A DNA stretch of 64,000 nucleotides from Epithemia pelagica. Taxonomy: Eukaryota > Protista > Bacillariophyta. The stretch is from the NCBI GenBank assembly GCA_946965045.2, contig OX337238.1, positions 186,001-250,000 of the forward strand, given 5' to 3'. This document shows, piece after piece, positions 12,844 through 57,536 of the stretch. Position numbers and translations under genes: made by a program. Below the pieces are notes generated by a model. It was given only the letters and a program-made list of their open reading frames with translations, searched no databases and had not been told where the DNA came from. Every line of letters begins with the position of its first letter. The stretch's first letter is position 1.

Positions 12844-13784
12844 TAGAGTTCCATTATGCAACAAAAATAGCATCTATGAGTACAACTCCTATCAAAAGAG
12901 TACAAGAAACGAAAAGATGATATAGACAGGCAACTACTCCTACGACTCCCATAGTTCTAGCTAATCCTTGCTCATGATCAATGCTCTACTTCCTAGAGAC
13001 AAAGCAATCATTATGTTTTGTTTTTATCTGTGTTTTTTCTGATATCTAGGAGTAGTCCGCTAGAAAACTATCCGTTAACCCTAATGTGAGATCTATCGTA
13101 CAGGCATGCGGAAGTCTTGCGTACCGCGATCAGTTATTGTTTTACTCCTATATTATTGTCCTTTGTTGAGTCCTACTCTTTCCTGCATGAATACTTGTAA
13201 CTTCAAAGCTTGAATAGGATCAGAAAGCGAAAAGACTTGTTTCTGGTTGGGCTCTTGTCTCACTGTAGCACAAATACATCTAAGGAAGGAACGGTACGCC
13301 AGTTTATGGCGGTTTAATTATCGATAAGAAAGCACCCCTAAGCGCATCCTACTAGAATCATCCGCGCGCAGGACACGCGCACACCTACAAGAACACGCGC
13401 ACACCTACAAGAACATGCGCATGGCCCTTCCTCACGTTATTACTAAAAATGTGCTTTCCAGAACCAGCAAGCGCATGACCCACATTTCACCAACTTCAAC
13501 ACCATGCACAGTCAAGAACCAATAGTCATCACATCCCTCCACCTTCATGCACAGTCAAGAACCAACAGTCATCACATACCCTCCTATGTATGCACTCATC
13601 CTTGATTGTGTCACATCACCATCATGCGCATTACTCCAGCATCAAGTGCAAGCAAGTTGAACACAGTGCATTTAACTAACACCATGCACACATTCCCACT
13701 AACAACCAGCGAATGAATGGAACACAATACATGTAGCTATATAGGAGTAGTATATGAAATGAAACCAATTGTCACTCTGATCAA

Positions 13785-15777
13785 TCACTGCCATGACCGT
13801 TTTCGTGGCCTTTTAGAAGGCCTTGTCACAGCATCATCATCTGCATACCCCATTCGAGAGCGATATTGCCCATTGAGAAACATCATGAACCAGATACCAC
13901 GGTCGCCTGCTCTGTCTTCACGAGCGATTTTCTCTTCCATATCCTCAAAATAGTCCATACCATCCTCATTCATACATCGACTTGAGTTCCAACTGCCTGA
14001 ATATTTGAAGCGAGGATACCTTGCTGAGGATGTATCAATCATTTGATCAACACCATTTTCATTGTACCACCTTGGATTTAATTCAAATAGTTTCGCCTTG
14101 AAAGTGGTCTTGCCCATGTGAGTCCACACATCCCAGCAATCCACAAGGATGGTCAATATGAACGCCTCGTCACTTGAAGTGAATAACTTCAAGGCCTTTT
14201 CGCAATGTTCCTTTCCCTGCTGCTCAGTGTGGTCACCAAAATTGAAATCAATCACGGTTTTATGCATATTCTCACCATAGACACATGGACCAAACAATTG
14301 CAAGAGATATGAATAGGCATAGTTGTCACACTTCTCTCCTCTCAATAACAGAAATTCTTCCAGGGTAGGCATTGGCCCAAAGTCTTCACAGTCGTTCAAA
14401 AGGCATGGATACCTCCGCTGGAAATTACTGTCACGCCATAGATCAAGACCCACATGTTCTAGATTCAGCAACAAATTATCTCACATCTCTTTATGAGAAG
14501 ACGACGTGATGAACCAACACATTCACTCTTCGATTGACACTTACTTATGAATGCTTTTCGCATGGAAGCCAGAACATTTGATCGTTTGCTTCGGAACTTG
14601 TCAAGCATATAAGGTGAATGTTCAATCCACCACTCCTCTTGTTGTTTTGTATCCGTAATACCTTTGCCTTTGAAATAGTGCTCAGTAAAATATGTTTTGC
14701 CATACTTCCCCCAAAGACCATTCGGATCTGCCTTAGTATCTTCGGACATGGAGAAATACTTGACATAACGCCATGCCACCTTCCGAACAAATGTATCAAA
14801 GAACTTCTCCGATACCACCTCAGGCTTTTTCTTCGGCTTTTGCTTCTTACTCTTGTCCTTTTCAACAGACCCTTTGTGTGTAGTGGATGTTACAATCGTA
14901 CTTGTCGGGCAAGATGATTGATTATGGTATACTGTTCTTGTCTGTGTTTCCTGTGCCAACTGATTTTGAATATCGTCTTGTAGAAGAGTTTCCATCGCCT
15001 GATCAGGCCCTGTTGTTAGCAAAGTAGATGACGAAGATGACGACATATCCGAAAGGGAAGAAACGTCGTTAGCAAAGGTATCACCTGATGCATTCAACCC
15101 ACAAACACCCCCGTCATTAGAGCCGTCTCACCGACAAATTGTCCTCCTCCATTTTGTGCATCTAACAACTTACTGACAAGTCCTCCAGCAGGAAAATGTC
15201 TTTCATTAGGATCAAAATCATCTCCATCATACTCACTGGGTCCATTGCTCATATTCTGCAATGCTCGTTGCATTTCAGGTCCAGTGAGAATATTTACACC
15301 GACGTCGTCTTCCTCCATGTTATTAACTGCCGTGTTTGTTGGTTGCGCAAAACCAGATGATGGTTGTGTTCTCAGCCCACCCTGTTCATTATTGCTATCA
15401 TCTGCTGAAGTCACATCGGCTCCATCTCTTTCTGAATTTGTTGCCTGCTCCAAAAGATTACCACTCCCTTCCACAGTTGTGCCTTCTTGTGCTTGTGCTT
15501 GATCGTTGTTCATCGAGATCTGTTCCTCTTCTTCCTCGTCATCAGAACTATCTTCTTGGAGTACTAAACCTCCATTGGCTGCTGCAATAAGAGCATCTTT
15601 GTTTGTAATTGTCCCGTCCTTGTTAGGAAGATTCTCTTTATTTCTTGTTGCCACTGCTGCCAAGATGCTTCTTCGTTGTCGTTCAACCTCTTTCTGATTA
15701 CTTCCATAGTTTGCATTTCGGACTGCTAAGGGTCGACGCCTCGTTGGAGCTGCATTTCTGGTGGTGACTCCTGCCAT
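13785..15777 (-). CDS. Transposon accessory protein of element 1 (three inferred exons)
   Basis: ORFs 15094..15777, 14465..15097 and 13785..14474 join through GT-AG pairs (GTCG|gtgaga...catcag|GTGAT; ATAA|gtaagt...ctag|AACATG). The C-terminal part has LFTSSDEAFILTILVDCWDVW...KYS, a motif I recall from CACTA-associated ORFs. Confidence 0.65.
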
Positions 15778-16341
15778 CGTTTATCTTGGATGCTCCGTCT
15801 GATTTATGACAAGGATATGAACAAGAGCAGGGTGACAACAAGTCCTCTGATGGACAACTATTCAAATTCAAATGCTGGAATGCTCCATGTTTGAATCATA
15901 AACTCCGTGTTTGAACGATGGTCCTTTGGAGAACGTATGAAGATGAGCATAGGTGGTTTCAAGTACATCATACTTGTCAGATGGAACATTGGTGCATGGG
16001 TTTGAATGATTGTCATTTCCTTTCTAATGTCGACAGTGTAGGTATCCTCGGCATTGACACAGTGTTTGAATTCCAATCGCTACTATCACCGTTGGTATCT
16101 AACCCGGCAGGCTGGATTGGATTAAGTAAATACACACGACCGTTTGAAAATATTATGATCCGTTCATGTACATAAGCGATTTTCAGTCGCTTTTATGCAC
16201 CAACGTCGGCCGATCCACCCAATGCGGAGAAATTCTGATATATGCCACAAGATTGACCACCGATGTCTCAATTTGCAGAAATCGATTACAGAGCATTTTT
16301 CATTCCAAACCAAAATCTAAAACCACCAGCATCGTACCATC

Positions 16342-19300
16342 ATGGGCCAGCGTCGTAAAGTAAAAAAGAAGTCGCGAAAGAGATGCTCAAATACAAGCCA
16401 ACAAGAGGAGTCCTTCATATCCTTTCAAGTGTGTCGTTTCTGTCAATCACGTTTCGATGCAAGAGGAATCAGCCGTCACGAAACAGTTTGTGAATTGAAA
16501 ATGAACACACAAAGGAAATGGCCAAATGTTGGCAATGACAACAATGATTGTGCCAGTAATATGAATGCTGATCCAATGAATATTGATATCATGGACGATG
16601 AAACCACTATTCCGCATGCTGACCCACCAAAAGCATACTATGTACCTGGTGATACAGATAATATTATTCTGCGCAACAGCAAGGAGTGCCCGGTTGATTT
16701 TCCTGCGTTCCTTGATAGAGATGGGAAGCAATTGAAACTTCATAAACACGATGCAGCCTTGGTCTCACTTATGATGTTACTTCGGAAAGCTGGTTGCCCC
16801 AAATATTTGTACAATTCGATCCTGGCATGGTCGAGTGACACATACTCAAGATGCGGTCCTGGGTTCTTCCTGGACAACCATTCAAAGAGGAAAACGTTCA
16901 TCGAAAAGTTTTCTACCAAAGGTTTCAATTATCCCAAGGCAAAATTTTTCCCGGTACCAATGGAATTCACCCAAAAACAGGGTGTGGTTGTACCAGAGAG
17001 TGAGAAATCAATAACAACACCAGTATTTGATTTGATCAGTCAACTACAGCGTGTATTACAAGATCCCGATGCAACCAAGAAAGAAAATACGATCCTCGAT
17101 GATGACGATCCGTATCGTCCATATGTTCCAAACAAGCACATCCAAAATATACAAGACGGAGAAGTATTTCGGAAAACAGTGGAAAAATATAGAGATGATC
17201 CAGATGCCTTCGTGGTTGGTCTTGTCTGTTATATGGACAAAACACATGCAACAGGGGATGGAAGATATACATCGGAGCCTGTTGTAATGGTGCCATCTTT
17301 TCTAACGGAAACACAAATGAGGAAAGCAAGGCAACAGATCATCCTTGGGACTATTACAGACATGGAAAGAAAATCATCGGCGGCAAAACATATCCTCGAT
17401 AAAGGGACTCCTTGCCGAAATTATCATGCTCAATTGACTAAGATCCTCGAAGGTCTTGTCAGTATCCAAAAACAGGAAGGTTTATGGATGAAACTACGCC
17501 TCCATGGGATTATCAAAGTTGTCCGTTTGATATTGCCAATGATTGTTGTCAAAGGAGACGGGAAGTCTCAGGATAACCTTGCAGGTCGGTATGCCTCGCA
17601 TCATCCAAGTGTTGGAAGACTATTATGGTGTTGCAACATTAAACCAAGGGATAGCCGATACCCATGGCATGAATGTTCTTATATCAACGCTGCAAGTACA
17701 TACAAAATGTGCTTGAATGCATTGGGTCTTAATGAAAATCGAGAAAAACTGACTGAACAGGATGTTGATTACCAAGAGAGAGACAATGATACATTTTCGA
17801 CTTTGACTGTTCCTACCTGTTTGAGCACATCGCAAGTAAGTCAAGAAAATAGCAGAGATGGAGGGGTCAATACCCTTGTGTCAGCTGCAAAAACCCAATT
17901 GCATGACATGGGACAATATGCAGTCGATCTTTGTTTTTCCAAGGTTTACCTGGGTGAAGGAACCAATTCTGAACATGGGATTTTCTCGGCCAGTAGTTGT
18001 GATGTTCTTCATACATTGAAATCTGGGATAATGAGATACATCATGATTGACTTTTTCACGTTGATGACAAAAACTGAACGGGCCATGTTTGATTATGTCT
18101 ACAATTCAATCTTTCGGGCAAGTAGACAGACTGTATTCTCGTATTCATCGAAACTTGGATATCCCGGAACATCATTCTCGACCGGGATCAGTAACCTGTC
18201 AAAAGTAACTGCCAATGAGTGGGTTGGGATCATGTTTGCTTCAGCAGCTCTATGTGCCACTGCCAGAGGTCGCCTTATATTTGCGAAGAATATGGCAAAG
18301 AAATGGAACAAGGTGGTTGCGGAATGGAAAAAACGACAAGCAAAGCAAACATCCAAAACCACCAACAAGACATGTCAAGTGGACATGGATCAAGTGCAAG
18401 AGACAAGTGAACCTATTGCTGACAATGAAGATGATACTCCACCAGATGAAGAGTACGAACGTACACGTCTTGATGATGATGATAGTGTTGACATTGATAT
18501 CACAGCTGAAACTGTTTTTGATGATGACCCAGTTGCTTACAGGTCTATCTGGGATGTTGATGAGCGGGAACCATACATAGACTTCCTGCATCTATTCGAG
18601 ACTCTTTTGTGTTTCAACAGCTGGATTCGTATGGATACATTCTGGGAAACAGACCCAGACTCACAAGAAGGACAAACAACAGCTTCTAAGTCTCTCGAAT
18701 CAGTGCGGATTTTGATGGATGGCATCAGGAGATATGCACCCAGGCTCGATAAAAAAGGCAAATTGATGTCCAACGGGTGGATGATACCAAAATTCCACAA
18801 TCTCATACACATTATACAACAGATTCAGAATTTTGGACCAGCACGACTGCTTGATGTGGAGTCAGAGGAAAGTAATCACAAGGAAATTGTGAAATTGAAT
18901 GCAAAAACGGTACAGAAACGTGGAAAAGGAATTTTTGAGTCGCAACTTGCAGAAAATATCTGGTGGATGCAAAGCTTGGAAATGCTGCAGGAAGCAACAG
19001 GTCTTGAAGAAGATCATGTCACCTTTCTCCAGGAAGGGAAGTCGCCTTATGAAATAAGGAGAAAAAAGGGATCCCAAAACCAACTCCCTACCACATCAAC
19101 CTCAAATAGTTGTGGAACGGTCATAGTAGTATCCATGACCAGAGAAAAATGTTTGATTCCAGTACCTCACACGAACGTACATACTTCTGGTGATAATCAA
19201 GACCAGTCATCAAATGAAATAGAAAAGGATCTTCCGTCTCCATTGGGTATGTCGATTCAAGTTCCAGGCACGACCAGAAAAGAACAAGATGGATCAAACC

Positions 19301-19785
19301 GAAACCAGACGAGTAGTGTACACAGGCGATTGACAGCAGCACCACACGAGGAGGATGTGGTATCAGTGAATATCGAATTCCATTCCAAAACAAATCATGA
19401 CATGACATTGCCACAGTTTTGTAATCACTTCTTTCGATTACATTACAAACGCTTTTTTCATCATATAGACGGGATGAGTGATGATCCAACAAATGAGACT
19501 TCAACCACACTGGAATTGTTCGGGAGCACAGAACTTAAGTTCGAAGACCCCAGGATAGGAAATATACGGGCTCATCCGAATTATCAAAGCGAGGGGCCAT
19601 GGAGAGATTGGGTGATGGCTAAAGTTCCAAAGAAAAAAAGGAAACCTCTTGACGAGGTATACAACCAACCTCTCGGAGAATTTGATTTAGTTACAATGTC
19701 TGGGCCGTGCGCAACATCAAAGAATGGGCTTCCGAATTCAATGAAAGTGCCCGTGACAATCTCGAGAAACGCTGTAATGAAATGA
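16342..19785 (+). CDS. Plavaka-family (CMC/CACTA-related) transposase, 1147 aa
   Basis: N-terminal CRFC...H...C finger. Motifs VCYMDKTH...EPV, VKGDGKSQD, CDVLHTLKSG, KFHNLIH...FGP...ESEESNHKEIVK and a C-terminal RAHPNY..GPW.DW. The ORF is uninterrupted. Confidence 0.8.
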   Translation: MGQRRKVKKKSRKRCSNTSQQEESFISFQVCRFCQSRFDARGISRHETVCELKMNTQRKWPNVGNDNNDCASNMNADPMNIDIMDDETTIPHADPPKAYYVPGDTDNIILRNSKECPVDFPAFLDRDGKQLKLHKHDAALVSLMMLLRKAGCPKYLYNSILAWSSDTYSRCGPGFFLDNHSKRKTFIEKFSTKGFNYPKAKFFPVPMEFTQKQGVVVPESEKSITTPVFDLISQLQRVLQDPDATKKENTILDDDDPYRPYVPNKHIQNIQDGEVFRKTVEKYRDDPDAFVVGLVCYMDKTHATGDGRYTSEPVVMVPSFLTETQMRKARQQIILGTITDMERKSSAAKHILDKGTPCRNYHAQLTKILEGLVSIQKQEGLWMKLRLHGIIKVVRLILPMIVVKGDGKSQDNLAGRYASHHPSVGRLLWCCNIKPRDSRYPWHECSYINAASTYKMCLNALGLNENREKLTEQDVDYQERDNDTFSTLTVPTCLSTSQVSQENSRDGGVNTLVSAAKTQLHDMGQYAVDLCFSKVYLGEGTNSEHGIFSASSCDVLHTLKSGIMRYIMIDFFTLMTKTERAMFDYVYNSIFRASRQTVFSYSSKLGYPGTSFSTGISNLSKVTANEWVGIMFASAALCATARGRLIFAKNMAKKWNKVVAEWKKRQAKQTSKTTNKTCQVDMDQVQETSEPIADNEDDTPPDEEYERTRLDDDDSVDIDITAETVFDDDPVAYRSIWDVDEREPYIDFLHLFETLLCFNSWIRMDTFWETDPDSQEGQTTASKSLESVRILMDGIRRYAPRLDKKGKLMSNGWMIPKFHNLIHIIQQIQNFGPARLLDVESEESNHKEIVKLNAKTVQKRGKGIFESQLAENIWWMQSLEMLQEATGLEEDHVTFLQEGKSPYEIRRKKGSQNQLPTTSTSNSCGTVIVVSMTREKCLIPVPHTNVHTSGDNQDQSSNEIEKDLPSPLGMSIQVPGTTRKEQDGSNRNQTSSVHRRLTAAPHEEDVVSVNIEFHSKTNHDMTLPQFCNHFFRLHYKRFFHHIDGMSDDPTNETSTTLELFGSTELKFEDPRIGNIRAHPNYQSEGPWRDWVMAKVPKKKRKPLDEVYNQPLGEFDLVTMSGPCATSKNGLPNSMKVPVTISRNAVMK

Positions 19786-20029
19786 AAGAAAGATTGAAAC
19801 AATCTGTCAGCAATTCGACCTCATGATCATAATTTGCCTCTATGGGGGGTTGTCACATACCAGCACTCCCCTCCTAGCCTCCCCCCCCCCCCCCCAACCG
19901 TACGCGAGCCGACCAATTCAACTCAGAGTGTCACACACAAATTGGATGAAATAGTAGATACTTTCCATCGTTTTCCAAAAGTCATCCTCAGTCTTCAGTC
20001 AGTTAAGCTATTCTACTCCTCTTCAAACA

Positions 20030-21157
20030 ATGATCAACCCATACAAATCGAGGAAGAAAACAGTTCCACCCTTGGTGGTCAAACCAAACTTTCCAGTCAC
20101 AAAGATACCTCCATCTAATGAAGAAATGATGATCAACCCATATGAGCTAGAGGAAATAGGGACCCCAATGGTCAAAACGCACTCTCCAACCCCGAAAACT
20201 TGCGACGGTGAACATGACAAGAAGCCACCGCCTGCGTCCAAATCAATAATCAAATGTCATCCACTTCCTTCTTCTAAGCTTGATACCAAGGAAGAAGAGG
20301 AGAAGAAACTACCACCAATCAAGCGCCCATCGTATCAGTTGATCCCAAACCCATATAAGAAGAAGCTCAAGGTTGCCGATCCATCTACTATTCCAATCTT
20401 GCTATTGCGTGACTCTCCTCCGATGTGTAAACCAAGAGCAAACCGAGATAAGCTGCATCTCGAAGTTATTCGGTTCACTGAGCTTGTCAATAAAATCTAT
20501 GGATCCAATGATGTTCCCCCAGAGCCAGTCTGTCCTTGGTGTTTTGTAACCGACAACCTTTCAACAGATCGTAGACTTACAGGAAAATGTTGGCATCGCT
20601 TTGGTAAATCTCTCTCATGTGCCGATTGTTGTTATGGTTGTGGAGTGCCCATGAACGGATGTGATTCAGGTGGGAATGAACGTTGTTGCACCGAAGCCCT
20701 GTATATCCATGATTCGATGAATATCACACGCGAAGAATCAGACATAAACAAGGTTCCATTGGTGTGTAAGTCTTGCTTAAGGCCATGCAATTCTTATTCA
20801 GAATGCGTCTTCTCGCATGGTTGTTGGAACTCTTGCAACAAGTACTTCGTCTGGCGATTCTGTCATATTGCTGGACGGGCGTTGGTGTACGCACAATTGA
20901 AGCCCAATTGCAAAGGACCAGGCACGATTCCCAAACATGCACAGGATATTATCAAAAACGCAACAGAGTTGATGTACAACGAACTGCGAGATCCGATGGA
21001 GTCTTTTCAGTACACATCTCCATTTTGTCATGTTCTTGACCAAGACTCCTGGTCTAAATGGCTTGTCTCCATGTCTTTCGGTCGATACTACAATTACATG
21101 CCGTTCTTCCGTCATTGTTACACAGCCTTGATGTCTTCATCGAAACCATTGTATTAA
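20030..21157 (+). CDS. Cys/His-rich protein of unknown function (paralogue A)
   Basis: 375-aa ORF. The N-terminus is Pro/Lys-rich with INPY repeats. It has CxxC clusters and the motifs NKYFVWRFC, WSKWLVS and NYMPFFRHC. Confidence 0.7.
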   Translation: MINPYKSRKKTVPPLVVKPNFPVTKIPPSNEEMMINPYELEEIGTPMVKTHSPTPKTCDGEHDKKPPPASKSIIKCHPLPSSKLDTKEEEEKKLPPIKRPSYQLIPNPYKKKLKVADPSTIPILLLRDSPPMCKPRANRDKLHLEVIRFTELVNKIYGSNDVPPEPVCPWCFVTDNLSTDRRLTGKCWHRFGKSLSCADCCYGCGVPMNGCDSGGNERCCTEALYIHDSMNITREESDINKVPLVCKSCLRPCNSYSECVFSHGCWNSCNKYFVWRFCHIAGRALVYAQLKPNCKGPGTIPKHAQDIIKNATELMYNELRDPMESFQYTSPFCHVLDQDSWSKWLVSMSFGRYYNYMPFFRHCYTALMSSSKPLY

Positions 21158-21218
21158 ACAAAGACTCGACTTCTTCCAAAGGCAAACTGGGAACAGATAA
21201 CAAGATTTATAATATATG

Positions 21219-22271: not shown

Positions 22272-22752
22272 CTGGAAATAGATCCACGGATAACCGATCG
22301 GTCGCGTTTGTGTACAGAAATCGTCACACTATACTATTCACTGTGAGTATTACCACATACTGTGAGGATAAGTGTAATCATTCCCAACATGGTCGCGTTT
22401 CACTCGCTGGGCTGACCTATCGGTGTGGCTTTGCAAAATTCCATTGACATGGAACAATGACATGCTTCTAGAACTTGAATGGCTCCAAATTTTCGTAGAG
22501 ACCATTTGGGTATCATTTGCATGGACAGTAAAGGCTCTGAACTTGTCTATCATCAACCAAAAGACTTGCAATAGACCCTACCGGTGTGGTGTTGCCGTCG
22601 TCCCAAAATTCTATGGACATGGAGCAAAGACATGCTTCTAGAACTCGAATGGCTCCAAATTTTCTAGAGACCCTTGGGGTATCATAGGCATTGATTGATG
22701 GTAGGTAGTGGTTTTGCTGACAGGTGGACATGGTCTTGTATATTAGAAATCT

Positions 22753-25700
22753 CTATTCGTCACTAGATTTCTGGCCCGACGCCAAGCCTCCAATTTCATG
22801 AGAATTGTCATCCTCGTTTTGTGTTACGGTAGCACTCAAAGATCTTGCATTTGTGCTAAAAAACCAACCAATCGTATGATTTCCCACATTCTTGTCTTTC
22901 GGTGGTATGGAGTGTGTATGGACAGATGTTCCATGTCTGATGATTCTCCCGTCCCATGCGATCGCAATGCCATGGAATAACCGGATACAAAGCCCATGAT
23001 AAGTCTTGTCCTTATGCTTTATAAGGACGTTGGGAAGGACGAAATACCAATCGTTGGTGCTGCCCGGGTTGGTTTCTGTCCAGATTGTAAAGGACACTGA
23101 TGCATCATGAATATCATAGTGGCTTGCATTCATCAAATCGCAACTCAAAATGATGGATGATGACACACCCCTTTCGTTTCCTCCCAATTCGTTTGGGACA
23201 TCCAAACCGAAGTTTGTTTCCAGGTGTCTGAAAGCCGATAACACACCAGGGAATTTTCTCTCACAGAATCGCCGAACACCTCCACAGATTTTTGGCAATA
23301 TATTCATCATGTTTGGAGATATTTTGAAAAGTTTGTCAGAAAAGAATGTACTTCTGCCACCCGTTTTTGTGCACACACCAACAGATGTCATAGTCCCCAT
23401 ATCACCATGGTTACACCTTGCATTGGCTGATCTCTCTAGTGTACCGCTCTGCGCGAAGTGACATGACCTCTTGTGTAACAATGAAAGTAGGTTTTTGTCA
23501 TTTTGCTGAAGTGTTGTCACTTTGACATGGCTGATGGTTTCGTTTTTACCCGCGTACCCACGTGTCCGAACAATGAATGTTGTATCTTCTCCGGTTTCCC
23601 TTACATCAAACAGGAGCGGACGGACTGAAGTATCAGGCGGAGGGGACAGGTTTCTATACAATGCTCCATGGACGTACTTTCGGCATCCAGTCTTATTAGC
23701 ACTGGCTTTATTCAGCAGTGTTTCACGATACCACACTCTAAGAGAATGTTGGTCATTTGGTGTCATTTTGGGTCTGGACTTTTCACTTGTATAATGATCA
23801 GGGGCCCAAAGTGGAGAACCACTTTCGACATCAGACGCTTGGTAGCATTCATGGACAACTCTCTTTGCACTTTGTGTCCAATCAATACACCAACACTTGA
23901 CAACCTTTTTGAGGAATGCCCCACCACTTGGTTGGCCGTCGGAATGTCGTAAGCGCAGCCAGGATATAGGTAGTGCTACCAAAGATGAAGTGCATTCCGA
24001 TGTTGCATACCCAGTATTCATTATCATTGCCGAAGTATAAAAAATACCGGCCAAAGGGATGATAACGATCACGTCATGGAAAATATGGTCCATACAATCA
24101 TCACAGTTTTTCTTGGATGTGCGACAATGGGAGATTGTATCGTCAAACGCAGACCACACGGTTTTGGGGTGTTTCCGATGTCCCTTATGTTGTTGACAGC
24201 GATTCAGTACACATTCTACCAAGAAGGCACATGGAGACCGGGTTGTTAAGAACTTCGGGTCACATTCTGTCACATGAAGCTTGTTGTCTTCGAAACAACA
24301 ATGGCTTGCTGGATCTTCCGTCACCTCACCAACCATGTCTTTCATTTGTTCGTACATGTTAGGTAATTTTCCCATGATTGTCTGGAGGTCTGTTGGTGTG
24401 ATGTTGTAGTCTTTCAGAACCTTTGTATAGCAGATGCCAAACACTCTCCGATCATCATTGCTACTGAGACAGAGTGATAGTAAGTCGCGTAGTTTTTTTG
24501 CTACCTTGTCCATGTCAGGAATTCCAAAAAAACACATTTCTGTATGATCGGATTCATTTGGTTTGGAGAATTTTGTCGTCAAATGGCTAGGTTTCTCAGC
24601 CTGTCGTCTCATATACTTCTTCATCGTTTCATGTGTTAGTGTCAACTTTGATAGGCCCTCTTGTCGTCGTTGCTTGTTCGTGGGTAGTCCCCTGGATGAA
24701 CCAATGGTCTTACATCCTTTACTTTTCCTTTCCGGTGAAGTATTTTGTTCGTCAGTATCGTCATGATTATCGTGTATTGGAGACTCGTGAATCTCCTTCG
24801 TACCTCGTTCGTCTTCTATGCGCTGATCCGTTTGTGCTGTCGTGTTGATGCTACTTCCCTTGTTATGGTCGTTTTTTGTCATTTGGTCATCGTTGTTCTT
24901 TTTGCTACCTTTTTGTTTGTCGGTACTATCCTTTCCTTCTTTGGTTTGTGTCGCATCATCTTGGTTGACACTGTCATTGTGACAGCTAGACGGATTATCA
25001 CTGTCAGGTGCGTTGTTGGCATTCTTAGACCCGTCACATTCCTTGCCCTTTTGTTTGTCTGTAGAACCATTGCCATCTCTGCTTTGTATCTCTTCCCCTT
25101 GTCCACATTCATCTTGGTGACTGGAGGTTGCTTTCTGACCGCTCTGTCTGTTCCGATCATCCCTCTCCTGATTGTCCTTGGAATTCCAACCAAGTTTGGA
25201 TAGGCCATCCTGCCCTCCACGACTCGCTGTAATGTGATGAATGTCCTTTTCTCCCTCTCTACGAGGTGATTGATTTGGTTGACTATTACCTCTATCAGTT
25301 GAGGGACGGTTAGGCTCTCTCTGACGGGTACGCCTAGAATGATCGTTGTGTCCAGGATGACTGTCTCTAAGTGACAAATGGTGCCTGGAATGTTCGTTGT
25401 ATCCAGGGAATCTCTCCCAATCCATCGGATGTCGATTAGACCATTGATTGTGGCTATCTCTGTATACCGAATGGTGCCTTGTATGTTCTCTTGAATGTTC
25501 GTTGTATCCAGAGAATCTCCTCCAATCCATCGAATGTCGATTAGACAATTGATTTTGATTATCATGTCTTCTTTTTCTATCCCGGTAAGTGTTTTCCATG
25601 ATTTGATCTCTTCTCCCTCTAGACTCGTCTTGGTGGTTATCATGGTATCCAGGTTGGTCTTGTCGTTCAATGACTCCTCTTCTAGTTTGTTGGTTATCTT

Positions 25701-27978
25701 GATCGAAATGTGAATGACGAGACCCATGATAATCTGATGTATTAGATCCTCTCGATCCTGGATGATCATCATTGAATCGATTCTGTCCATGCTGACAATA
25801 CACTGGCCTGTCATGTTCAGGTTGCGAACCCCACTCATTTGTTCTGGGGCTTCGAGCTGTCGACAGGACGTTGTTCTGATTCCGTCCTCCCCATAGCCCA
25901 TATGGATTCTCTCTCTTGTCCTTGGTTCTTTCGTTATCATGTTGGGTTTGCTCTGTTCTATGTCTTTCTTCAGGCAGCTCACTCCGGTTACCCCAATTCG
26001 CAGGCATTGCAACGGAACGTGATGAGTTATTTCCTCCCCGTTGCTGGAATTTAGGCTTCTCACCATCTGGTGACTGATAGATTGCTTTGTGTTCAGAAGG
26101 ATGAGTATATGTTCTTTGAACAGAACGTGTCATAGGACAGAAGTACAATAGACTTTGAATATCCTGGCTGCACACCATACATGTGTTGTGGCCCCGCTGC
26201 ATCCAATCTCCAACACATTCCCGACAAAATGTATGTCTACAAAGAAACAGTTCGCAATCCACTTTTCTGGTCATACAAATCGAACAAACCTCGGGCTTGT
26301 ATTTTGTCTCACCTCCTCTTTGTTCTAGTGTTGACGGCTTGTTACTCACAGGTGATTTTTTTGATGATTCTTCAGGGCGTCCCTCAATCGTAGTTGTAGT
26401 GTCTTCGACTGTTTTCCTATGTCCCTCTTCAGGGAATCCCTCGCTCGTAGTTGTAGTTTCTTCCACTGTTTTCTTGTGTCCCTCTATCTTCTCCGCACCA
26501 AACATGTGGATGTTACTCTTGATCTTTTGTCCACACTGGGGACACCATACATTATGATACTTGAACCGTATTCGTAAGCAATTTCCGTGAACCAGATGTC
26601 CACATGGGATGAGGGTACAGACTTCGCTGTCTGTATCTGTTTTCAATGCCCTGTTACAGCATACACAAGAATCTGGACAATATACAACGGTCGGTAGCAA
26701 TCGATTTATATCTCTCTTGGAAAGTTTGGAGTCAAGTAACACCTCCTTGGGTTCTAATCCCACCTTCGGGCACGGTATGAACAATATGTCACCATCCGTA
26801 GTCCACGTCTCTGAACACCCACCATCAGATAGATCGACGTTCTCCGTGTATTCGTATTTATCGGTACCACGTGAAAACCCCACTTCAACAGGATCGTCGT
26901 CGCTGTTGCCATCGAAATTGTCAGGTCCCAACACCAAAGGAGAAATCGAATTGCCACCAACAGCATGCTCTAGTCCTCTCGAAAATTCATTATTGTACCG
27001 TATTTGATTACTCGAAAAACAATTGGATATCGTCATACTCATGTCTATCTGACCTTCTTTCCGACCCGGGTTTGGTCGACTACTCATTATGTTTCCAAGC
27101 ATTCTGATCACAATAGCTTGTGGCATTGGCTTTGGAGTATCCTTCTTAGGTTCTGGCATTTTCACAATGCGATATCGCCACTTGTTACATTCCTTGTTTG
27201 TATCATGTATTGTCTCATCTTCTTCCACTAATGATGGGTCATAACATAGACTGACAGGCGGGGCACCTTTTGACGTATTGACCAGGTCCCATTTCCGTAG
27301 TACATGACGCGTCGTTCCTTCCCAGTATTGGTCTGATCGATTATGTATTGGTTCGTAGATATGAAGTATCTTTTTGTCGATTTCGAAAGCCAATAAAGCT
27401 GGGTCGCTGACATCAGTTGCTGTTGTCAAGGCAATGATCGCCAATATCAGTGTGTTCGGATCCTGTTGTCTCCATGATGACATAGGAATTTTCTTAGGAA
27501 ATGGGTTCCTGTTTGCTTCATCAAATGTTACTTTGTCAACATATACTAGGTTCTGATGGTTGTGATGGACCATCAATTTCAAACAAGTATAGAAAGATTC
27601 AATCGGCATGCCCGTCCTTGAAGTGTTGTAGCAAAGATCTCTCCGACAATGTCTATGTGGGATATGCAAAACACGCGTTGTAGGGTCCTGGTCATTCATC
27701 AACCCACTGTAAGACATGCATAGTGTGCACCTAAATAATGTCTTGATTTTGACATGCGTGTTGTCCTTCCCCATACTCTTAGCATACTGGGTTGCTAGCT
27801 TCATGGCCGACTTGATGTTCTCGTTGTTTCTGTTAGTTTGTTTTTCCGCGAACTTGTCTAAGTAACCGTCACCAATGTTGTCGATGGATTCATTCGAGTC
27901 CCATGAGTCTTTTCTTCTCTTCTGGTTTACTATAGGATCAAGAACGTGTGGAATTTCAATGAAAGGCGGTGGTACCAC
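22753..27978 (-). CDS. Multidomain protein: RING-H2 + RING-HC + C-terminal TET/JBP-like 2OG-Fe(II) dioxygenase fold
   Basis: 1741-aa ORF. RING-H2 CVCC...CGHLVHGNC...CPQC (~26540-26668). RING-HC CSIC...CRHTFCREC...CMVC (~26170-26290). C-terminal NASHYDIHD (HxD, ~23113-23121), WYFVLPN, GLCIRLFHGIAIAWDGRIIRHGTS (distal His ~22933). The true start is uncertain because the ORF begins at GTG. Confidence 0.72.
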   Translation of the reverse strand: MVPPPFIEIPHVLDPIVNQKRRKDSWDSNESIDNIGDGYLDKFAEKQTNRNNENIKSAMKLATQYAKSMGKDNTHVKIKTLFRCTLCMSYSGLMNDQDPTTRVLHIPHRHCRRDLCYNTSRTGMPIESFYTCLKLMVHHNHQNLVYVDKVTFDEANRNPFPKKIPMSSWRQQDPNTLILAIIALTTATDVSDPALLAFEIDKKILHIYEPIHNRSDQYWEGTTRHVLRKWDLVNTSKGAPPVSLCYDPSLVEEDETIHDTNKECNKWRYRIVKMPEPKKDTPKPMPQAIVIRMLGNIMSSRPNPGRKEGQIDMSMTISNCFSSNQIRYNNEFSRGLEHAVGGNSISPLVLGPDNFDGNSDDDPVEVGFSRGTDKYEYTENVDLSDGGCSETWTTDGDILFIPCPKVGLEPKEVLLDSKLSKRDINRLLPTVVYCPDSCVCCNRALKTDTDSEVCTLIPCGHLVHGNCLRIRFKYHNVWCPQCGQKIKSNIHMFGAEKIEGHKKTVEETTTTSEGFPEEGHRKTVEDTTTTIEGRPEESSKKSPVSNKPSTLEQRGGETKYKPEVCSICMTRKVDCELFLCRHTFCRECVGDWMQRGHNTCMVCSQDIQSLLYFCPMTRSVQRTYTHPSEHKAIYQSPDGEKPKFQQRGGNNSSRSVAMPANWGNRSELPEERHRTEQTQHDNERTKDKRENPYGLWGGRNQNNVLSTARSPRTNEWGSQPEHDRPVYCQHGQNRFNDDHPGSRGSNTSDYHGSRHSHFDQDNQQTRRGVIERQDQPGYHDNHQDESRGRRDQIMENTYRDRKRRHDNQNQLSNRHSMDWRRFSGYNEHSREHTRHHSVYRDSHNQWSNRHPMDWERFPGYNEHSRHHLSLRDSHPGHNDHSRRTRQREPNRPSTDRGNSQPNQSPRREGEKDIHHITASRGGQDGLSKLGWNSKDNQERDDRNRQSGQKATSSHQDECGQGEEIQSRDGNGSTDKQKGKECDGSKNANNAPDSDNPSSCHNDSVNQDDATQTKEGKDSTDKQKGSKKNNDDQMTKNDHNKGSSINTTAQTDQRIEDERGTKEIHESPIHDNHDDTDEQNTSPERKSKGCKTIGSSRGLPTNKQRRQEGLSKLTLTHETMKKYMRRQAEKPSHLTTKFSKPNESDHTEMCFFGIPDMDKVAKKLRDLLSLCLSSNDDRRVFGICYTKVLKDYNITPTDLQTIMGKLPNMYEQMKDMVGEVTEDPASHCCFEDNKLHVTECDPKFLTTRSPCAFLVECVLNRCQQHKGHRKHPKTVWSAFDDTISHCRTSKKNCDDCMDHIFHDVIVIIPLAGIFYTSAMIMNTGYATSECTSSLVALPISWLRLRHSDGQPSGGAFLKKVVKCWCIDWTQSAKRVVHECYQASDVESGSPLWAPDHYTSEKSRPKMTPNDQHSLRVWYRETLLNKASANKTGCRKYVHGALYRNLSPPPDTSVRPLLFDVRETGEDTTFIVRTRGYAGKNETISHVKVTTLQQNDKNLLSLLHKRSCHFAQSGTLERSANARCNHGDMGTMTSVGVCTKTGGRSTFFSDKLFKISPNMMNILPKICGGVRRFCERKFPGVLSAFRHLETNFGLDVPNELGGNERGVSSSIILSCDLMNASHYDIHDASVSFTIWTETNPGSTNDWYFVLPNVLIKHKDKTYHGLCIRLFHGIAIAWDGRIIRHGTSVHTHSIPPKDKNVGNHTIGWFFSTNARSLSATVTQNEDDNSHEIGGLASGQKSSDE

Positions 27979-28060
27979 ACCATCACCTGTCTCCTCATTT
28001 CCCTTGTTTATGGAAGCACAACGTCTCTAAGACAAAGAGATCAATCATTTTTGAGATTGT

Positions 28061-29227
28061 CTAATCCTTCTCGATTCTTGGCAAGTCGCTCGAACATCTT
28101 ACCTCGTTGTCTGCGGTTTTTTCATTGTCGTCGCTTATAATCTTCCTGACCTCTTCCACACGGTCTGATTTGAGGGCGACTTGGTTCGACGTTGTAATGG
28201 AAGTTGGTAGTACTTGTTCCTTTCTCTCGTCAGTAGGATCATTACCAGCCACGACCTTCTGTCTCTTTTTTGCCGGCGAGTCTGTACTCCGACGTTGCAC
28301 GGCAATTTCTTTCGATTTCCTGGCAGACAGTAACTCTTGTTTTTCTATATAAACCAGTAGATCGTAGAACATACCGCCATCGTCTCCGTTTCTTCCATAT
28401 TGTACCAAAGAATCTCTTTCTTCAAGGTACATCTTGAACCATGTGTCAGGCATCGTATACAACAGTGCTTTCTCCATTTGGATATTGGAAATCACGTCCA
28501 TGTTCTCGTCCGATGTCGATTCTGAGATGAAACGGTGTATGGCCACCATATGTTCGATAACCCATGCGATTTTACCAACAGGTACGAGACGCGGTTTCCT
28601 GTAAAGGGAGGAATCATCTAGAAGGTATCGTTTCAATGCTTCTCCAATCCCACCGATCCCCTTGCGTGTCTTCTTAGAGACTAAGCCATGAGAGGAAAGA
28701 AATCTGATAATGGTTTGTCTCAGATTCTCAGCACTGTCTATCACTGTCGTCCCAAATGCCTGATTCCAAATATTGGAAACAGGACTGTAGAGAGTCTTTT
28801 TGAACAACAGTCGAGCAACCATTGGAGTCAACTTGTCATCATCATCCATCTCGTTCTTAATTCTTGTGAAACAGAAAACGGAGTGACAGATGATATCTTG
28901 GAATGCAGGCGAATAACAGATTGGTAGGAATATCTTCACATAATGGCCGTCATGTGGTACCTCCACTGTTGTCCATTTTCCTGATTTGTCTTGGAAAACA
29001 CTTTCATACCAATTGAGGACACTTTCGTATGTAATGGGCATAATACCGGTGTAGTGAGATTCCTCGCTTGTGTGTGTTCGAAGTGTATGATTGGTACCAG
29101 AAACAGTCATAGTCGACACGTCCTTTCTTTTGTTTCGCACTTCATCATTCATTGAAGAAGGGTCACCAGGATTCTTGGCGGTCGGTGGCTTTTTGTAGCG
29201 AGGGCCCTTGATGCGGTTGCCCGCCAT
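28061..29227 (-). CDS. Hypothetical protein (388 aa) inside element 1
   Basis: Long ATG-initiated ORF with globular-looking composition; no recognised motif. Confidence 0.6.
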   Translation of the reverse strand: MAGNRIKGPRYKKPPTAKNPGDPSSMNDEVRNKRKDVSTMTVSGTNHTLRTHTSEESHYTGIMPITYESVLNWYESVFQDKSGKWTTVEVPHDGHYVKIFLPICYSPAFQDIICHSVFCFTRIKNEMDDDDKLTPMVARLLFKKTLYSPVSNIWNQAFGTTVIDSAENLRQTIIRFLSSHGLVSKKTRKGIGGIGEALKRYLLDDSSLYRKPRLVPVGKIAWVIEHMVAIHRFISESTSDENMDVISNIQMEKALLYTMPDTWFKMYLEERDSLVQYGRNGDDGGMFYDLLVYIEKQELLSARKSKEIAVQRRSTDSPAKKRQKVVAGNDPTDERKEQVLPTSITTSNQVALKSDRVEEVRKIISDDNEKTADNEVRCSSDLPRIEKD

Positions 29228-29676
29228 TTTGTACTTGTCACGATGCGCTTTTTGTGTAGCGTCTTTGTTTCAACAACAACAACAACAAGGGTAGTCGAGG
29301 AAGCGCTTTAATTGTAGCGTCTTTGAGACAACCTTGTGTACTTGTCTAAACAGTAAAAAGTGTGCGCTGAATTGTGTAGCGTCTTTGGTTTGGTCCTGAA
29401 CTCTGGTGGTAACAAAACAACAACCAAATCGAAGGAATACACTACGACGCGCTTTATATGTAGCGTCTTGTTCGTTGTGATCCAACAATCGGTGCCAGAA
29501 TTTGCTACTCCAAAACCAGGGGTTGGTTGGTTGTCCAAGCAATCTCGCGACAAGAATAGAACAGAAGCAACTGGCTACCACCGTGTCACACTGCTTGCTT
29601 TGGGTCTGTTCTATTCAAGTCGGAGTATCACGAGGACAGGAGGGTTCTTGATAAACAATCTAACAGATAGCCCGAA

Positions 29677-30560
29677 ACCGCTTTAATTGTAATAGCGTGA
29701 TTGGAATGAAGGACAGAGCTGAGTGAAACAAGCAACAATCAGACAGATGCCCCAAGCCGCTTTAATTGTAGCGTGGTGATTGGAATGGCAGAGCTGCAAG
29801 ATAGTGCAAGTGTCAAAGATAGGACAAATGTCGACAATATTTCGAATGCTCTGGTGGTCGTTCTTCTTCTTGGGTTCCTCTTCTTCTTGTTTTCCTGTTG
29901 TAGCGGTTTTGGAGTGAAGGTCGTGGTTGAAAGGAAGCAAGCAACAATCAGACAGATGCCCCAAGCCGCTTTAGTTGTAGCGTGATTGGAATGGCAGAGC
30001 TGCAAGATAGTGCAAGTGTCAATGTCTCGAATGCTCTGGCCGTGCTTGAGTTCCTCTTCCTCTTCTTCTGGTGCAGCGGTTTTGGAGTGAAGTGTTGTAG
30101 CGGTTTTGGAGTGAAGTTTGTGGTTGAAAGGAAGCAAGCAACAATCAGACAGATGCCCCAAGCCGCTTTAGTTGTAGCGTGATTGGAATGGCAGAGCTGC
30201 AAGATAGTGCAAGTGTCAATGTCTCGAATGCTCTGGCCGTGCTTGAGTTCCTCTTCCTCTTCTTCTGGTGCAGTGGTTTTGGAGTGAAGGTGGCTGAAGA
30301 GGAAGCAAGCAACAAAAAGGTGGCTGAAAAGGAATCAAGCAACAATCAGACAGATGCCCCAAGCCGCTTTAATTGTAGCGTGATTGGAATGGCAGAGCTG
30401 TTAGGTTGGTGAAAGAAGTTGGATAGGTGAAAGGATTGAAAAGGGAATCTCGGCAGAGAGAAAGCAAGCAACAAAAAGGTGGCTGAAAAGGAACCAAGAA
30501 ACAATCAGACAGATGCCCCAAGCCGCTTTAATTGTAGCGTGATTGGAATGGCAGAGCTGT
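29677..30560 (+). repeat. Subterminal tandem array, ~160-210 bp unit
   Basis: The core CAATCAGACAGATGCCCCAAGCCGCTTTA(A/G)TTGTAGCGTG occurs at ~29736, 29945, 30142, 30343 and 30502, with a partial copy at ~29678. Confidence 0.9.
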
Positions 30561-32439
30561 TAGGTTGATGAAAGAAGCTGGATAGATAATGGGATTGAAC
30601 AGGGGAATCTCGATAGCGTTGGGTGATCGATTGCTGTTGTTGCTGCTGCTGCTGTTGTTGTTTGTTGTGGTGTGTTGGGTGGAGGTGGAGGGAGATGAAT
30701 GAGCATCGATTCTGGTGGTCGTTGATTGTTGAATGACTAGTATGCTAAGTTGTTCGGTTTTGTTCGATGGATCAGAGTGTCGAGTTGGTAATCCCCGCGG
30801 TTAGGGTGATTGGGAAGGAGGATCCATCTGAGACATTCTTTGGGACATCCATGTGCGTCAGTCTTTCTGGCAGCTGCTGTGTGATGTGGTGGGAGTGGAA
30901 ATTCGTGATTCAAAGGTGAGGGGACAGACGCTTGCGCATGAGGGTTGCGTCATGCGCGTCTCGGGGGGGTCGAGCGCGCCAGATAGTTGTAGTGCGCATT
31001 ATCGGAGTGTGGCGCGCGTTATTCGTGGTTTGATCGCGGGCTTGTGCGCATTAAAATTGTTGCATGCGCGTGATAGTCAGCTCGATCTCTAGAACTAGCT
31101 AGAGAAATGTGCATTGTTAGACCTAGATTTGCAGATTTAGTTGGGAAAGCAGGATTATAGTTAAAAACTGCGCATATAAAAATAAACTGCGCATAAAAAA
31201 TTTTAATTCGGCGAATTTTTTCTAGAAATTCGCTTTTGGGGGTGGAAATCAAGCGCCAGGGCCCATTTCCCTCCTTAGATGTAGTGCCATCACCGTGAGT
31301 GTTTGCAGTTTTAACACAGAGGCACGCATCCGATCAACCTGTCCGGTCACTTTTTCCTCTGCACACAATTTGGGGATTTTTATTCAATCATCGAGTAGCA
31401 TGAGTATTGTCAGTGAGGAATCCTTGTTCTTGGAAAACGACCTCCACGGGAGGAGTGGAGGGAAGATTCCAGTGATCCTACCTATCATACAGGCGACGAT
31501 GAATACGAGAAAGGCCAGGAATCGCACAATGAGGTTCAGCAAGTTCGACAAATGACCAAACGTGAAACGAGACGAATTCGCATTTGGCGATTGGTGTTGG
31601 GAACTGTCATTTTAGGAGCAGGGGCGTTGGTCTCATGGTTCACCTATCAGTATCTGGACGATCAACTCAAGGACGAGGCTATTGATAAGGTACGATCGAA
31701 AAGAAGATAATTGTTGCCTAGCTTTGAGAGTGGGATTCGTCTTGCCATGACTTTTACTCGCTATTTTGACAAACTTGAATGACCGCTTGATTCTCAAAAG
31801 TCCTTTTTCTCTCTTTGTCTCTGACATCCTCTTTCTCTCTCTTTTGAATTCTATGTTTAGTTCAATGTCTTTTCTCTCACCATTGCGCAAGTCTCTAAGA
31901 TGCATTTTGGCAACATGTTTGAAGCTTGTCGGTCTTTATCGTTTTCCATTACGGCCCAGGCTTATGCACAAAACTCTACGTTTCCCTTTGTGACCGTAGA
32001 AAATTGGGAAGTCCAAGCTCGTGAGGCTAGGTTACGGGGCAACGTGGAAGTCTTGACTTATAATCCCTTGTTGTCGGATACGCCCACGATCATGGCATTC
32101 AATGCCTATGCAAGACAGAACTCCGATTGGCAACAGGAAAGCATCGAAGAATATAAAAAATTGACTCCGGCCATCCGCAATGTTACATTTCCAGTCAGTA
32201 CCGATGCCTTTGTCTATACACTGGTCGATCCCTCCAAACCCTGGATCAAAATTCCTTCCATGGGCAACCCAGCTGCCCTTCCTGTGTGGATGCAATCACC
32301 ACCACCTCAACGAGTATCGTGGATGATGGCCGACTTGTATTATCTCTTTGGCAGGTATGCCGATACCATGATGTTGGTGGGAGGTACGTTTTTAGTTTTT
32401 TTTACTATAACGGTGTGTTATTAGACTACGGGTTACGCC

Positions 32440-57503: not shown

Positions 57504-57536
<33 letters not shown>

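Follow-up and report, generated by a model that had tools for sequence, protein, structure and literature searches.

The association of TET genes with fungal transposons of this kind was reportedly first noted by Iyer et al. in 2014. TET-positive PlavakaB transposons are known in Agaricomycete fungi (Agaricus bisporus, Gymnopus confluens; Kojima 2025, PMC12730594), and the PlavakaB type is defined by 5'-CATCA..TGATG-3' termini and target-site duplications of 2–3 bp (PMC12730594). Giant Plavaka elements of 17.4–19.1 kb have been described in the red alga Bostrychia moritziana (10.1101/2025.02.11.637652). The window, which is the whole 64-kb stretch of DNA analyzed here, contains an element of 18,005 bp (positions 13277–31281) that we compared with both systems. 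The best explanation overall, and a probable one, is a giant element of the Plavaka lineage with a RING-TET cargo gene of anti-silencing function; in this judgment the identity of the element is weighted above the mechanism.

The element shares with the fungal TET-positive PlavakaB transposons a Plavaka-type transposase, duplications in the 2–3 bp class, CATC...GATG termini and an internal gene for a TET/JBP dioxygenase, which has been proposed to let the element escape silencing by methylation. The two systems differ in several respects. First, the host here is a diatom-like alga, and the termini read CATCT rather than the fungal CATCA. Second, the transposase has diverged beyond what the Pfam model recognizes. 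Third, the TET domain here is the C-terminal part of a protein of 1700 aa that also has an extra N-terminal region and two RING fingers, whereas the word 'RING' is absent from the fungal paper (PMC12730594). Finally, the element is far larger, with four additional conserved ORFs.

The Bostrychia elements are of the same size class and likewise combine a Plavaka transposase with a multi-gene accessory cassette including a 2OG-dependent oxygenase, and tandem repeat arrays adjoin the oxygenase gene in both. However, in PAG1-3, the Bostrychia cargo, SET accompanies an N6-adenine methylase and a 2OG oxygenase accompanies ParB. None of the ParB, methylase and SET domains was detected in the element here, where the oxygenase is fused to RING fingers. 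According to the sequence-only reading, made before this analysis, such a fusion is not known to have been described in a bounded diatom element, and we found nothing in the literature on TET-carrying Plavaka in diatoms and nothing on the RING fusion. TET-carrying Plavaka (fungi, PMC12730594) and giant Plavaka with 2OG-oxygenase cargo (red algae, 10.1101/2025.02.11.637652) are already published, so the novelty holds only narrowly, for the RING fusion and the host group.

Element ends and subterminal regions

The termini of the element read 5'-CATCT...AGATG-3' and lie within 15-nt terminal inverted repeats, CATCTAAGGAAGGAA on the left (13277–13291, + strand) and its partner on the right (31267–31281, − strand; reverse complement CATCTAAGGAGGGAA), which are complementary at 14 of 15 positions. 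Similarity to six other copies begins at the left repeat. The dinucleotide TA stands on both sides as a 2-bp target-site duplication (13275–13276 and 31282–31283). The matching ends that had been read from the sequence are thus present, but they are not of the CACTA type: the 'CACTA' at the right end is made up of flanking bases, the 2-bp duplication and the first base of the element. The element had been placed at 13272–31286, and its true ends are located five bases further in on each side. The ends and the duplication fit the PlavakaB type most closely, with a duplication of 2 bp and termini that differ only in the fifth base (CATCT..AGATG).

Both subterminal regions are rich in GCGC and TGCGCA. 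The left region (13292–13776), a putative protein-binding region, includes a 20-nt direct repeat at 13375–13394 and 13395–13414, and the first 500 bp of the element hold seven GCGC, whereas most 500-bp stretches of the interior have 0–1. In the right region (30777–31266), the terminal 500-bp bin holds five TGCGCA and ten GCGC compared with about 0–1 elsewhere. Further in, an array at 29246–30612 (+ strand; repeat families D1–D4) contains the 16-nt quasi-palindrome CGCTTTAATTGTAGCG nine times on the same strand, compared with 0.32 matches expected and none elsewhere in the window. The copies are partly placed within tandem units of about 160–210 bp (29725–30612). The motif contains a CpG, and the array may be a protein-binding site.

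Copies of the element

Six copies elsewhere in the same assembly are 98–99% identical and have their ends in common, whereas the Bostrychia copies are mostly degenerate. In copy L001 the similarity to the window stops exactly at the element ends, and the same ends were found in five further copies. Including the window, the seven loci are located on different contigs with unrelated flanks and sharp alignment borders, and the copies range from 18.0 to 18.6 kb. A 2-bp duplication of its own is seen in six of six copies (TA, TG, GA, TG, TG and GA). The differing flanks and the separate 2-bp duplication of each copy argue against segmental duplication as the origin of the copies. The window copy is a young copy of a giant cut-and-paste DNA transposon. 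Five of the six other copies hold the RING-TET ORF between the same termini, which agrees with the earlier reading that the element carries this ORF; L001 is a deletion derivative without the RING-TET gene.

In one assembly we found clusters with 53 transposase and 47 RING-TET members; the latter is a 90%-identity cluster, all within that assembly, and many of its members are fragments. The host genome contains about fifty copies of the element, a count that may include both haplotypes. The element is also present at high word depth in the DNA contigs of three runs, all three of which are DNA assemblies; no RNA run turned up.

The transposase and the Plavaka lineage

The transposase ORF of the window (16342–19785, + strand) encodes 1147 aa and is truncated at its C-terminus, compared with 1285 aa for the intact form in other copies. 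Compared with all other copies, the window copy lacks 373 bp at 19686, a deletion that costs the protein its last 170 residues; up to aa 1115 the protein keeps the register of the intact form and is identical to it, after which an out-of-frame tail follows. Because of this truncation, any mobility of the window copy is probably supplied by intact sister copies.

Searches of the window transposase against the Plavaka model of Pfam, even in protein pieces, gave no direct match. Its relatives connect it to the model: six environmental proteins (L013, L015, L023, L024, L026 and L030) pass the PF18759 cut-off, scoring 28.5–35.4 bits against 26.3, and are in turn linked to the window transposase directly or through its family profile, for which the E-values are at or below 1e-38. 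L013 aligns to the window transposase with 165 bits in phmmer. In addition, the family and the Plavaka-positive relatives retain D299 (in a DKT motif), D406 (in a GD motif) and E843. The Atlas neighbours of the transposase are Plavaka clusters at 0.97, and its structure prediction has a pLDDT of 32, too low to model the fold. By transitive homology to PF18759 and its DDE residues, the ORF is a DDE transposase of the Plavaka lineage, which belongs to the CMCT clade, and the Plavaka-like character assigned to it by the sequence-only reading is borne out through relatives that match both.

The EnSpm/CACTA group is often taken to include Plavaka or to stand next to it (PMC12730594; 10.1101/2025.02.11.637652), and some Atlas neighbours of the transposase carry Transposase_21, so that the element could be a canonical CACTA/EnSpm transposon instead. 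We consider this hardly credible. The termini are CATCT...AGATG instead of CACTA/CACTG, the duplications are 2 bp and not 3 bp, and the relatives match PF18759 and not PF02992; neither the window transposase nor its relatives gave a match to Transposase_21 (PF02992).

The RING-RING-TET cargo gene

The cargo gene (22753–27978, − strand) is an intact ORF of 1741 codons, as originally claimed, which belongs to the cluster of 47 members and has zero stop codons in all six copies compared. Its N-terminal region (aa 59–430; 26689–27804, − strand) gave no match in Pfam or PDB sequence searches. The Atlas feature neighbours of this region are mostly Peptidase_C48 (0.91, with 155 shared features, which is below the reliable range), and we treat a relationship to this family as a lead only. 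For an Ulp1/SENP (Peptidase_C48) N-terminus, the region gave no PF02902 match, and no HW...D...C pattern was seen in its translation.

Both of the RING fingers seen earlier are upheld. RING finger 1 (aa 438–482; 26533–26667, − strand) follows the RING-H2 pattern; its zf-RING_2 match (E-value 1.4e-5, 25.7 bits) is just under the curated cut-off of 27.3, and its C3H2C3 ligand pattern is complete. RING finger 2 (aa 565–609; 26152–26286, − strand) is of the C3HC4 type and passes the Pfam cut-offs for both zf-C3HC4_3 (E-value 2e-7) and zf-C3HC4 (E-value 3.9e-6). The RING fingers are followed by a low-complexity basic and polar linker (aa about 640–1110; 24649–26061, − strand) with direct repeats D5, D8, D9 and D14, and a 48-nt in-frame length difference between copies is located at 25034.

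The TET/JBP-fold domain occupies the C-terminus (aa about 1234–1741; 22756–24279, − strand), with the HxD motif at 23113–23121 and the distal histidine at 22933–22935. The HxD...H motif pointed out previously corresponds to the triad H1620/D1622...H1682, which is invariant in the alignment of 48 homologues; three arginines (R244, R332 and R492 in the numbering of a 552-aa piece) are nearly invariant and are candidates for the residue that binds 2-oxoglutarate. The predicted structure of the domain, a confident model, matches TET2, NgTet1, CMD1 and CcTet best, with a clear gap down to the AlkB and FTO enzymes. The fold therefore matches nucleic-acid dioxygenases first, in line with the original suspicion of a TET/JBP relationship. 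Compared with human TET2, Naegleria NgTet1, Chlamydomonas CMD1, Coprinopsis CcTet and kinetoplastid JBP1/2, the domain shares the double-stranded beta-helix, the extra elements of the family and the HxD...H iron triad, but the sequence identity is just 8–14%. The characterized enzymes also differ in their own context of CXXC, helicase or J-binding domains, where the protein here has RING fingers. At the level of sequence, Pfam Tet_JBP (PF12851) gave no match in the window protein and matched one of the 48 homologues (E-value 0.003), and a TET-family sequence profile gave no match among PDB chains; the Atlas feature neighbours of the domain carry PF12851. Judged from the model and the triad, the domain is a predicted Fe(II)/2-oxoglutarate dioxygenase of the TET/JBP fold whose iron site is intact. 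We hold the structural identity of the element and its RING-RING-TET cargo with high confidence.

Selection differs between the parts of the protein. Among copies found via intact proteins, in pairwise comparisons that are non-independent, the TET domain has a pN/pS of 0.16, the transposase one of 0.19, and the N-terminus plus RING fingers one of 0.59. The TET domain is thus the most constrained part of the protein and about as constrained as the transposase. Purifying selection on both the transposase and the cargo indicates that the cargo serves the element, and the invariant triad together with the low pN/pS of the TET domain argues for a working enzyme.

Proposed function

The copies also carry a record of their decay. 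Among private C>T/G>A changes, 100 of 214 are located at CpG, while CpG accounts for 17% of C/G positions. This enrichment suggests that the element copies are methylated by the host, and it implies that any protection from methylation is incomplete. We tentatively favour anti-silencing via oxidation of 5-methylcytosine by the TET domain, with doubts that slightly outweigh our confidence. In this mechanism, the host would CpG-methylate the element copies, as read from the CpG-biased decay; the TET domain would oxidize 5-methylcytosine on the element and so initiate demethylation, which would sustain its transcription and mobility. Ubiquitin-ligase activity would come from the RING fingers, and its target would be either the RING-TET protein itself or a factor of chromatin or of methylation maintenance.

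A more specific form of this mechanism is possible but rather doubtful. The RING-RING-TET protein would be a transposon-encoded, self-targeted epigenetic eraser that couples 5mC oxidation to ubiquitin signalling and is recruited via the CpG-containing CGCTTTAATTGTAGCG array and the GCGC-rich subterminal regions. If so, it would act as the functional opposite of maintenance factors of the UHRF1 type, and a giant DNA transposon would stay active despite repeat methylation by the genome. Arabidopsis VANDAL encodes VANC, an anti-silencing factor that acts on the element's own sequence motifs, where methylation is lost. The likeness to this system, which is cited in the Bostrychia preprint (10.1101/2025.02.11.637652), is in the possible mode of action only and not in ancestry; VANC is not an oxygenase and VANDAL is of the Mutator type, whereas enzymatic base oxidation is proposed here.

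The dioxygenase may instead modify another base. CMD1 is a 5mC glyceryl-transferase, CcTet is a 5mC/6mA enzyme and the JBP proteins are thymine hydroxylases. Since the nearest structures span these activities as well as the 5mC oxidases, the fold does not reveal which substrate is used or which product is formed. Thymine hydroxylation as in JBP, addition of glyceryl to 5mC as in CMD1 or removal of 6mA as in CcTet would mark the element DNA or nearby chromatin, for example for transcription or target choice, instead of erasing silencing; we regard this as unlikely.

The fusion of two RING fingers and a large N-terminal region of no matched fold to the dioxygenase domain, and the motif array that adjoins the cargo block as a putative protein recruiter, would also suit a role as a protein that takes part in transposition or manipulates the host in a way that has nothing to do with methylation. 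For example, it could use ubiquitin to remove a chromatin or repair factor where the element excises, with the dioxygenase domain as a DNA-binding or regulatory module. Such a module is difficult to reconcile with an iron-binding triad that is invariant across 48 homologues and with a TET domain so much more constrained than the N-terminus and RING fingers. Moreover, L001 spread or persisted without the RING-TET gene, so the gene is not needed in cis. This role is therefore quite improbable.

Gene order and accessory ORFs

The arrangement of the genes is conserved beyond the element itself. In a second family, L002, the gene order is the same, including RING and TET, with identities of 52% for the transposase and 42% for TET. 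In the metagenome relative L010, with 24% transposase identity, a TET-profile ORF is located directly behind the transposase. These relatives bear on whether the cargo could be a passenger that currently has no function, a host RING-TET gene captured once and amplified passively. The cargo-free deletion derivative L001, the many fragments in the RING-TET cluster and the restriction of the three runs to DNA assemblies would all be compatible with a passenger. However, RING and TET stand at the same position in a family with 42–52% protein identity, a TET ORF adjoins the transposase even at 24%, the TET domain remains at a pN/pS of 0.16 across copies, and the ORF is intact in six of six full copies compared. 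A passenger is thus very unlikely, and a cargo that serves the element is the preferred reading.

Three consecutive ORFs of 229, 210 and 227 aa (13785–15777, − strand) are divergent from the transposase, have pN/pS values among the copies of 0.27–0.37 and match no Pfam family. In L002, L008 and L009, homologues of the ORF at 13785–14474 are found upstream of the transposase and in divergent orientation to it; this ORF is a partner gene conserved with this lineage of transposases. Behind the transposase are two Cys-rich ORFs that are weak paralogues of each other; together with the RING-TET gene and a 388-aa ORF they make up the cargo block. The first (20030–21157, + strand, 375 aa, pN/pS 0.21) matches no Pfam family and shows 40% identity to its counterpart in L002; the second (21219–22271, − strand, 350 aa, pN/pS 0.30) also has a homologue in L002. 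Lastly, the ORF at 28061–29227 (− strand) matches no Pfam family; a gene of 388 aa is predicted there in all full copies, with a pN/pS of 0.25.

Element boundaries and state of the copies

The window element is a real, bounded and recently amplified giant transposon of PlavakaB-like type. A repeat search of the window gave an imperfect inverted repeat of 17 nt at both element edges. Such a repeat alone could be due to chance, and other copies were therefore sought. At 90% identity, the cluster containing the transposase ORF has 53 members and that of the large ORF has 47, all of them from a single ENA assembly. We compared the window copy with six further loci, each on a different contig. Five of the six are 98–99% identical to the window over the entire element; the sister copy L001 shows the same identity (98–99%) but lacks 22510–28168, which is the entire RING–TET gene. 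Among the copies with readable ends, the alignments all break off at one and the same pair of positions, which places the element at 13277–31281 (18,005 bp). Its ends form a 15-nt inverted repeat, CATCTAAGGAAGGAA and CATCTAAGGAGGGAA. Just outside them, every copy with readable ends carries its own 2-bp duplication (TA in the window, then TG, GA, TG, TG and GA), for which the chance expectation is 1 in 16 per copy. Private substitutions number only 22–91 per copy over 18 kb; thus, the family is young. Parts of the element are also present in marine biofilm and sediment metagenomes; these, with an Atlas neighbour cluster labelled Bacillariophyta, are the basis for calling the host diatom-like.

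The sequence-only reading had described CACTA-type ends. The 'CACTA' of the right end is actually composed of flank, duplication and the first base of the element, and the real termini read CATCT...AGATG. The features of a canonical CACTA element, namely CACTA ends, 3-bp duplications and PF02992, are all absent. PlavakaB is defined by 2–3 bp duplications and the termini CATCA..TGATG, and every fungal TET-carrying Plavaka belongs to it (Kojima, PMC12730594); the ends of the window element fit this definition except at the fifth base.

The two main ORFs are as they had first been read: one of 1147 aa on the plus strand (16342–19785) and one of 1741 codons on the minus strand (22753–27978). Several additional ORFs of 200–390 aa accompany them. 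The window copy lacks 373 bp at 19686 that are present in all other copies. Up to residue 1115 its transposase is in register with, and identical to, the intact form of 1285 aa; an out-of-frame tail of 32 residues follows. Relatives conserve the 170 C-terminal residues that are lost here, so the window copy is probably non-autonomous; its RING–TET ORF is intact. L003, another sister copy, has a shortened right arm that stops at element position 17936. It lies beside genes encoding RVT_1, RNase H and rve domains (L003:3686–7060 and L003:7189–8084) and is probably broken by, or abuts, an LTR retrotransposon. At the rebuilt empty site the junction is spanned only by a 115-codon ORF, which we do not read as a disrupted host gene.

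Transposase lineage

Pfam searches, run with all accessory ORFs and with the transposase both entire and cut into four, gave nothing meaningful, and neither single-sequence nor profile searches of solved structures matched the transposase family. A structure prediction from a six-sequence alignment was unusable (pLDDT 32). The protein-language-model neighbours in the Atlas, which serve as a lead and not as a test, are Plavaka clusters (0.97) followed by Transposase_21. An initial homologue search by words returned only the cluster of the transposase itself; with words taken from the core region, it found five relatives at 27–52% identity, none with a Pfam match. Scanning metagenome contigs with the transposase alignment pattern yielded 21 more distant loci, and six of nine long ORFs from these loci pass the curated cut-off of PF18759 (Plavaka). 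The Plavaka-positive ORFs also match the window transposase (phmmer up to 165 bits) and the transposase family profile (E 1e-38 or better). The candidate catalytic residues D299, D406 and E843 are kept throughout the family and its relatives, as is the C-terminal motif HPN...W.DW.

The RING–RING–TET protein

The final 552 residues of the large ORF have 655 homologues in a representative library, and H1620, D1622 and H1682 are invariant across a 48-sequence alignment. Sequence methods reached no named family with this domain, and TET-family searches of solved structures gave no match, whether by single sequence or by profile. The AlphaFold model of the domain is confident (pLDDT 85, pTM 0.86). 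In Foldseek it places human TET2 at the top (E 1e-10), then CMD1, CcTet and NgTet1, and among Swiss-Prot models JBP1/2, CMD1 and TET1–3 lead. Structural comparison scores are 19.3 for TET2 (297 aligned residues), 16.1 for NgTet1, 15.7 for CMD1 and 15.4 for CcTet, followed by ALKBH3 at 11.9 and FTO at 11.4. Neighbours by shape in the Atlas are clusters from basidiomycetes and Bacillariophyta, together with phage Tet_JBP and PF20515, a Tet-like family of fungi. The TET/JBP-like dioxygenase first read from the sequence thus stands: the structural matches are led by TET2 and other TET/JBP enzymes, and they point neither to a non-nucleic-acid dioxygenase nor to a domain devoid of the DSBH fold. The predicted enzyme class is well supported by the fold, which does not specify the modified base.

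Upstream of this domain, RING 2 (aa 565–609) is significant and over the Pfam cut-offs, and RING 1 (aa 438–482) has a RING-H2 pattern with a score slightly below the cut-off. The linker at about residues 640–1110 is repetitive, basic and polar. A homologue search with the N-terminus and RING region found its own cluster only; by this method, no relative of the RING–TET fusion is detectable beyond this genome. Pfam detects no RING in the long TET-domain homologues P0057, P0002, P0039 and P0040. The N-terminal 430 residues have no sequence match in Pfam or in a single-sequence search of solved structures. Atlas neighbours of aa 59–430 (26689–27804, minus strand) are mostly Ulp1/Peptidase_C48, at a similarity (0.91, 155 shared features) too low to trust, and no Ulp1-type catalytic His/Cys motif is seen there; the region may be a protease-like module that has degenerated, or the lead may be false.

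Cargo linkage and coding constraint

The RING–TET ORF lies inside the same termini as the transposase in five of the six other copies, as the sequence-only reading required of a genuine cargo, and it belongs to the element. The order of genes is also kept in a second, related family of the same assembly, L002, at only 52% transposase identity: the partner gene (the small left-arm ORF, 13785–14474, minus strand), the transposase, a Cys-rich ORF, a second Cys-rich ORF and TET. The L002 TET is 42% identical to that of the window, and a RING finger precedes it on the opposite strand. A more distant locus, L010:684–6734 (metagenome contig JFJP01051089.1), encodes a Plavaka-lineage transposase with 24% identity to that of the window. 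The ORF directly downstream of it is convergent and 821 aa long; it matches the TET-family profile at E 2.7e-46 and lacks a RING. This transposase–TET pair shows that the linkage extends beyond this genome.

The partner gene has homologues at L008:781–1047 and L009:838–1047, upstream of and divergent from the transposase, an arrangement that holds even at 27–41% transposase identity. This conserved placement suggests that the partner gene encodes a second core protein of the transposon lineage, in a position like that of a DNA-binding helper. The contig parts available for L008 and L009 hold no TET gene, and the 1018-aa neighbour ORF of L008 is unrelated to the TET profile.

The values of pN/pS are 0.16 for the TET domain, 0.19 for the transposase, 0.21–0.37 for the other ORFs and 0.59 for the N-terminus with the RINGs; they are rough, being drawn from six or seven copies that were found via intact proteins and compared in non-independent pairs. 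Even so, they argue against the genes being passive passengers.

Signs of methylation and putative function

Deamination of 5-methylcytosine is expected to leave C>T/G>A changes biased to CpG. Among the private substitutions of the window copy and its six sisters C>T/G>A is dominant, and 100 of 214 such changes (47%; seven copies) are at CpG, a context comprising 17% of C/G positions. This excess suggests that the element copies are methylated. The CpG observed/expected ratio of the family consensus is 0.80. The subterminal regions are rich in GCGC/TGCGCA. A 16-nt quasi-palindrome with two CpGs occurs in nine same-strand copies from the cargo block to the right end, against 0.32 expected, and nowhere else in the window. 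Given the CpG decay, the motif array and the parallel in red algae, the RING–TET protein may act on the element's own methylated DNA, and a putative anti-silencing function is the most likely reading.

The search for runs that hold element sequence found three, all of them DNA assemblies (contigs reach 509 kb), and no RNA data. A few 'joints' derive from single short contigs and are not introns. No known RNA families were found within the element.

Comparison with known elements

In fungi, TET/JBP genes are found inside Plavaka and many other DNA transposons, and RING is nowhere mentioned in the paper that describes them (PMC12730594). Red algae carry giant Plavaka elements of 17–19 kb with a three-gene cassette including a ParB-2OG-oxygenase, and tandem repeat arrays adjoin the oxygenase gene there, much as the motif array of the window element lies beside its cargo block (10.1101/2025.02.11.637652). 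A full-text literature search found no paper tying Plavaka or transposon-borne TET/JBP to diatoms. Since the fungal and red-algal elements are already documented, the kind of element is known, and novelty lies in the lineage of the host, the fusion to RING fingers and the Cys-rich and 388-aa genes carried alongside.

Transposon-borne TET enzymes have so far been known from fungi, and red algae have an oxygenase cargo of related type. The young family described here, with about fifty copies in a diatom-like alga, carries the strategy to a third, distant eukaryotic lineage, in which the transposase and the TET domain are similarly constrained. The RING–TET fusion is a new architecture that would link base oxidation with ubiquitin signalling. 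Full copies, the truncated-transposase copy of the window and copies without the RING–TET gene form natural controls, with which the question whether a mobile element can reverse host methylation enzymatically is open to direct test. The family could, in addition, be a source of a compact and divergent TET enzyme for study.

Neighbourhood in the window

Two ORFs of some 1000 aa each, at 40032–43259 (plus strand) and 56942–59872 (minus strand), match no Pfam family above the cut-off; the latter gives a sub-threshold CDC45 match (E 2.5e-4, 19.9 bits vs a cut-off of 34). Neither these nor the other large ORFs of the window are similar to the element transposase. Immediately right of the element, a 1055-aa ORF (32440–35607, minus strand) matches RVT_1 (E 2.7e-7); thus, the transposon adjoins a retroelement. 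To its left, at 6920–9079 (plus strand), lies a host gene with the end of a guanylate/adenylate cyclase domain and a cyclic-nucleotide phosphodiesterase domain. The flanks are higher in GC than the element (0.54 in the right flank vs 0.44 inside).
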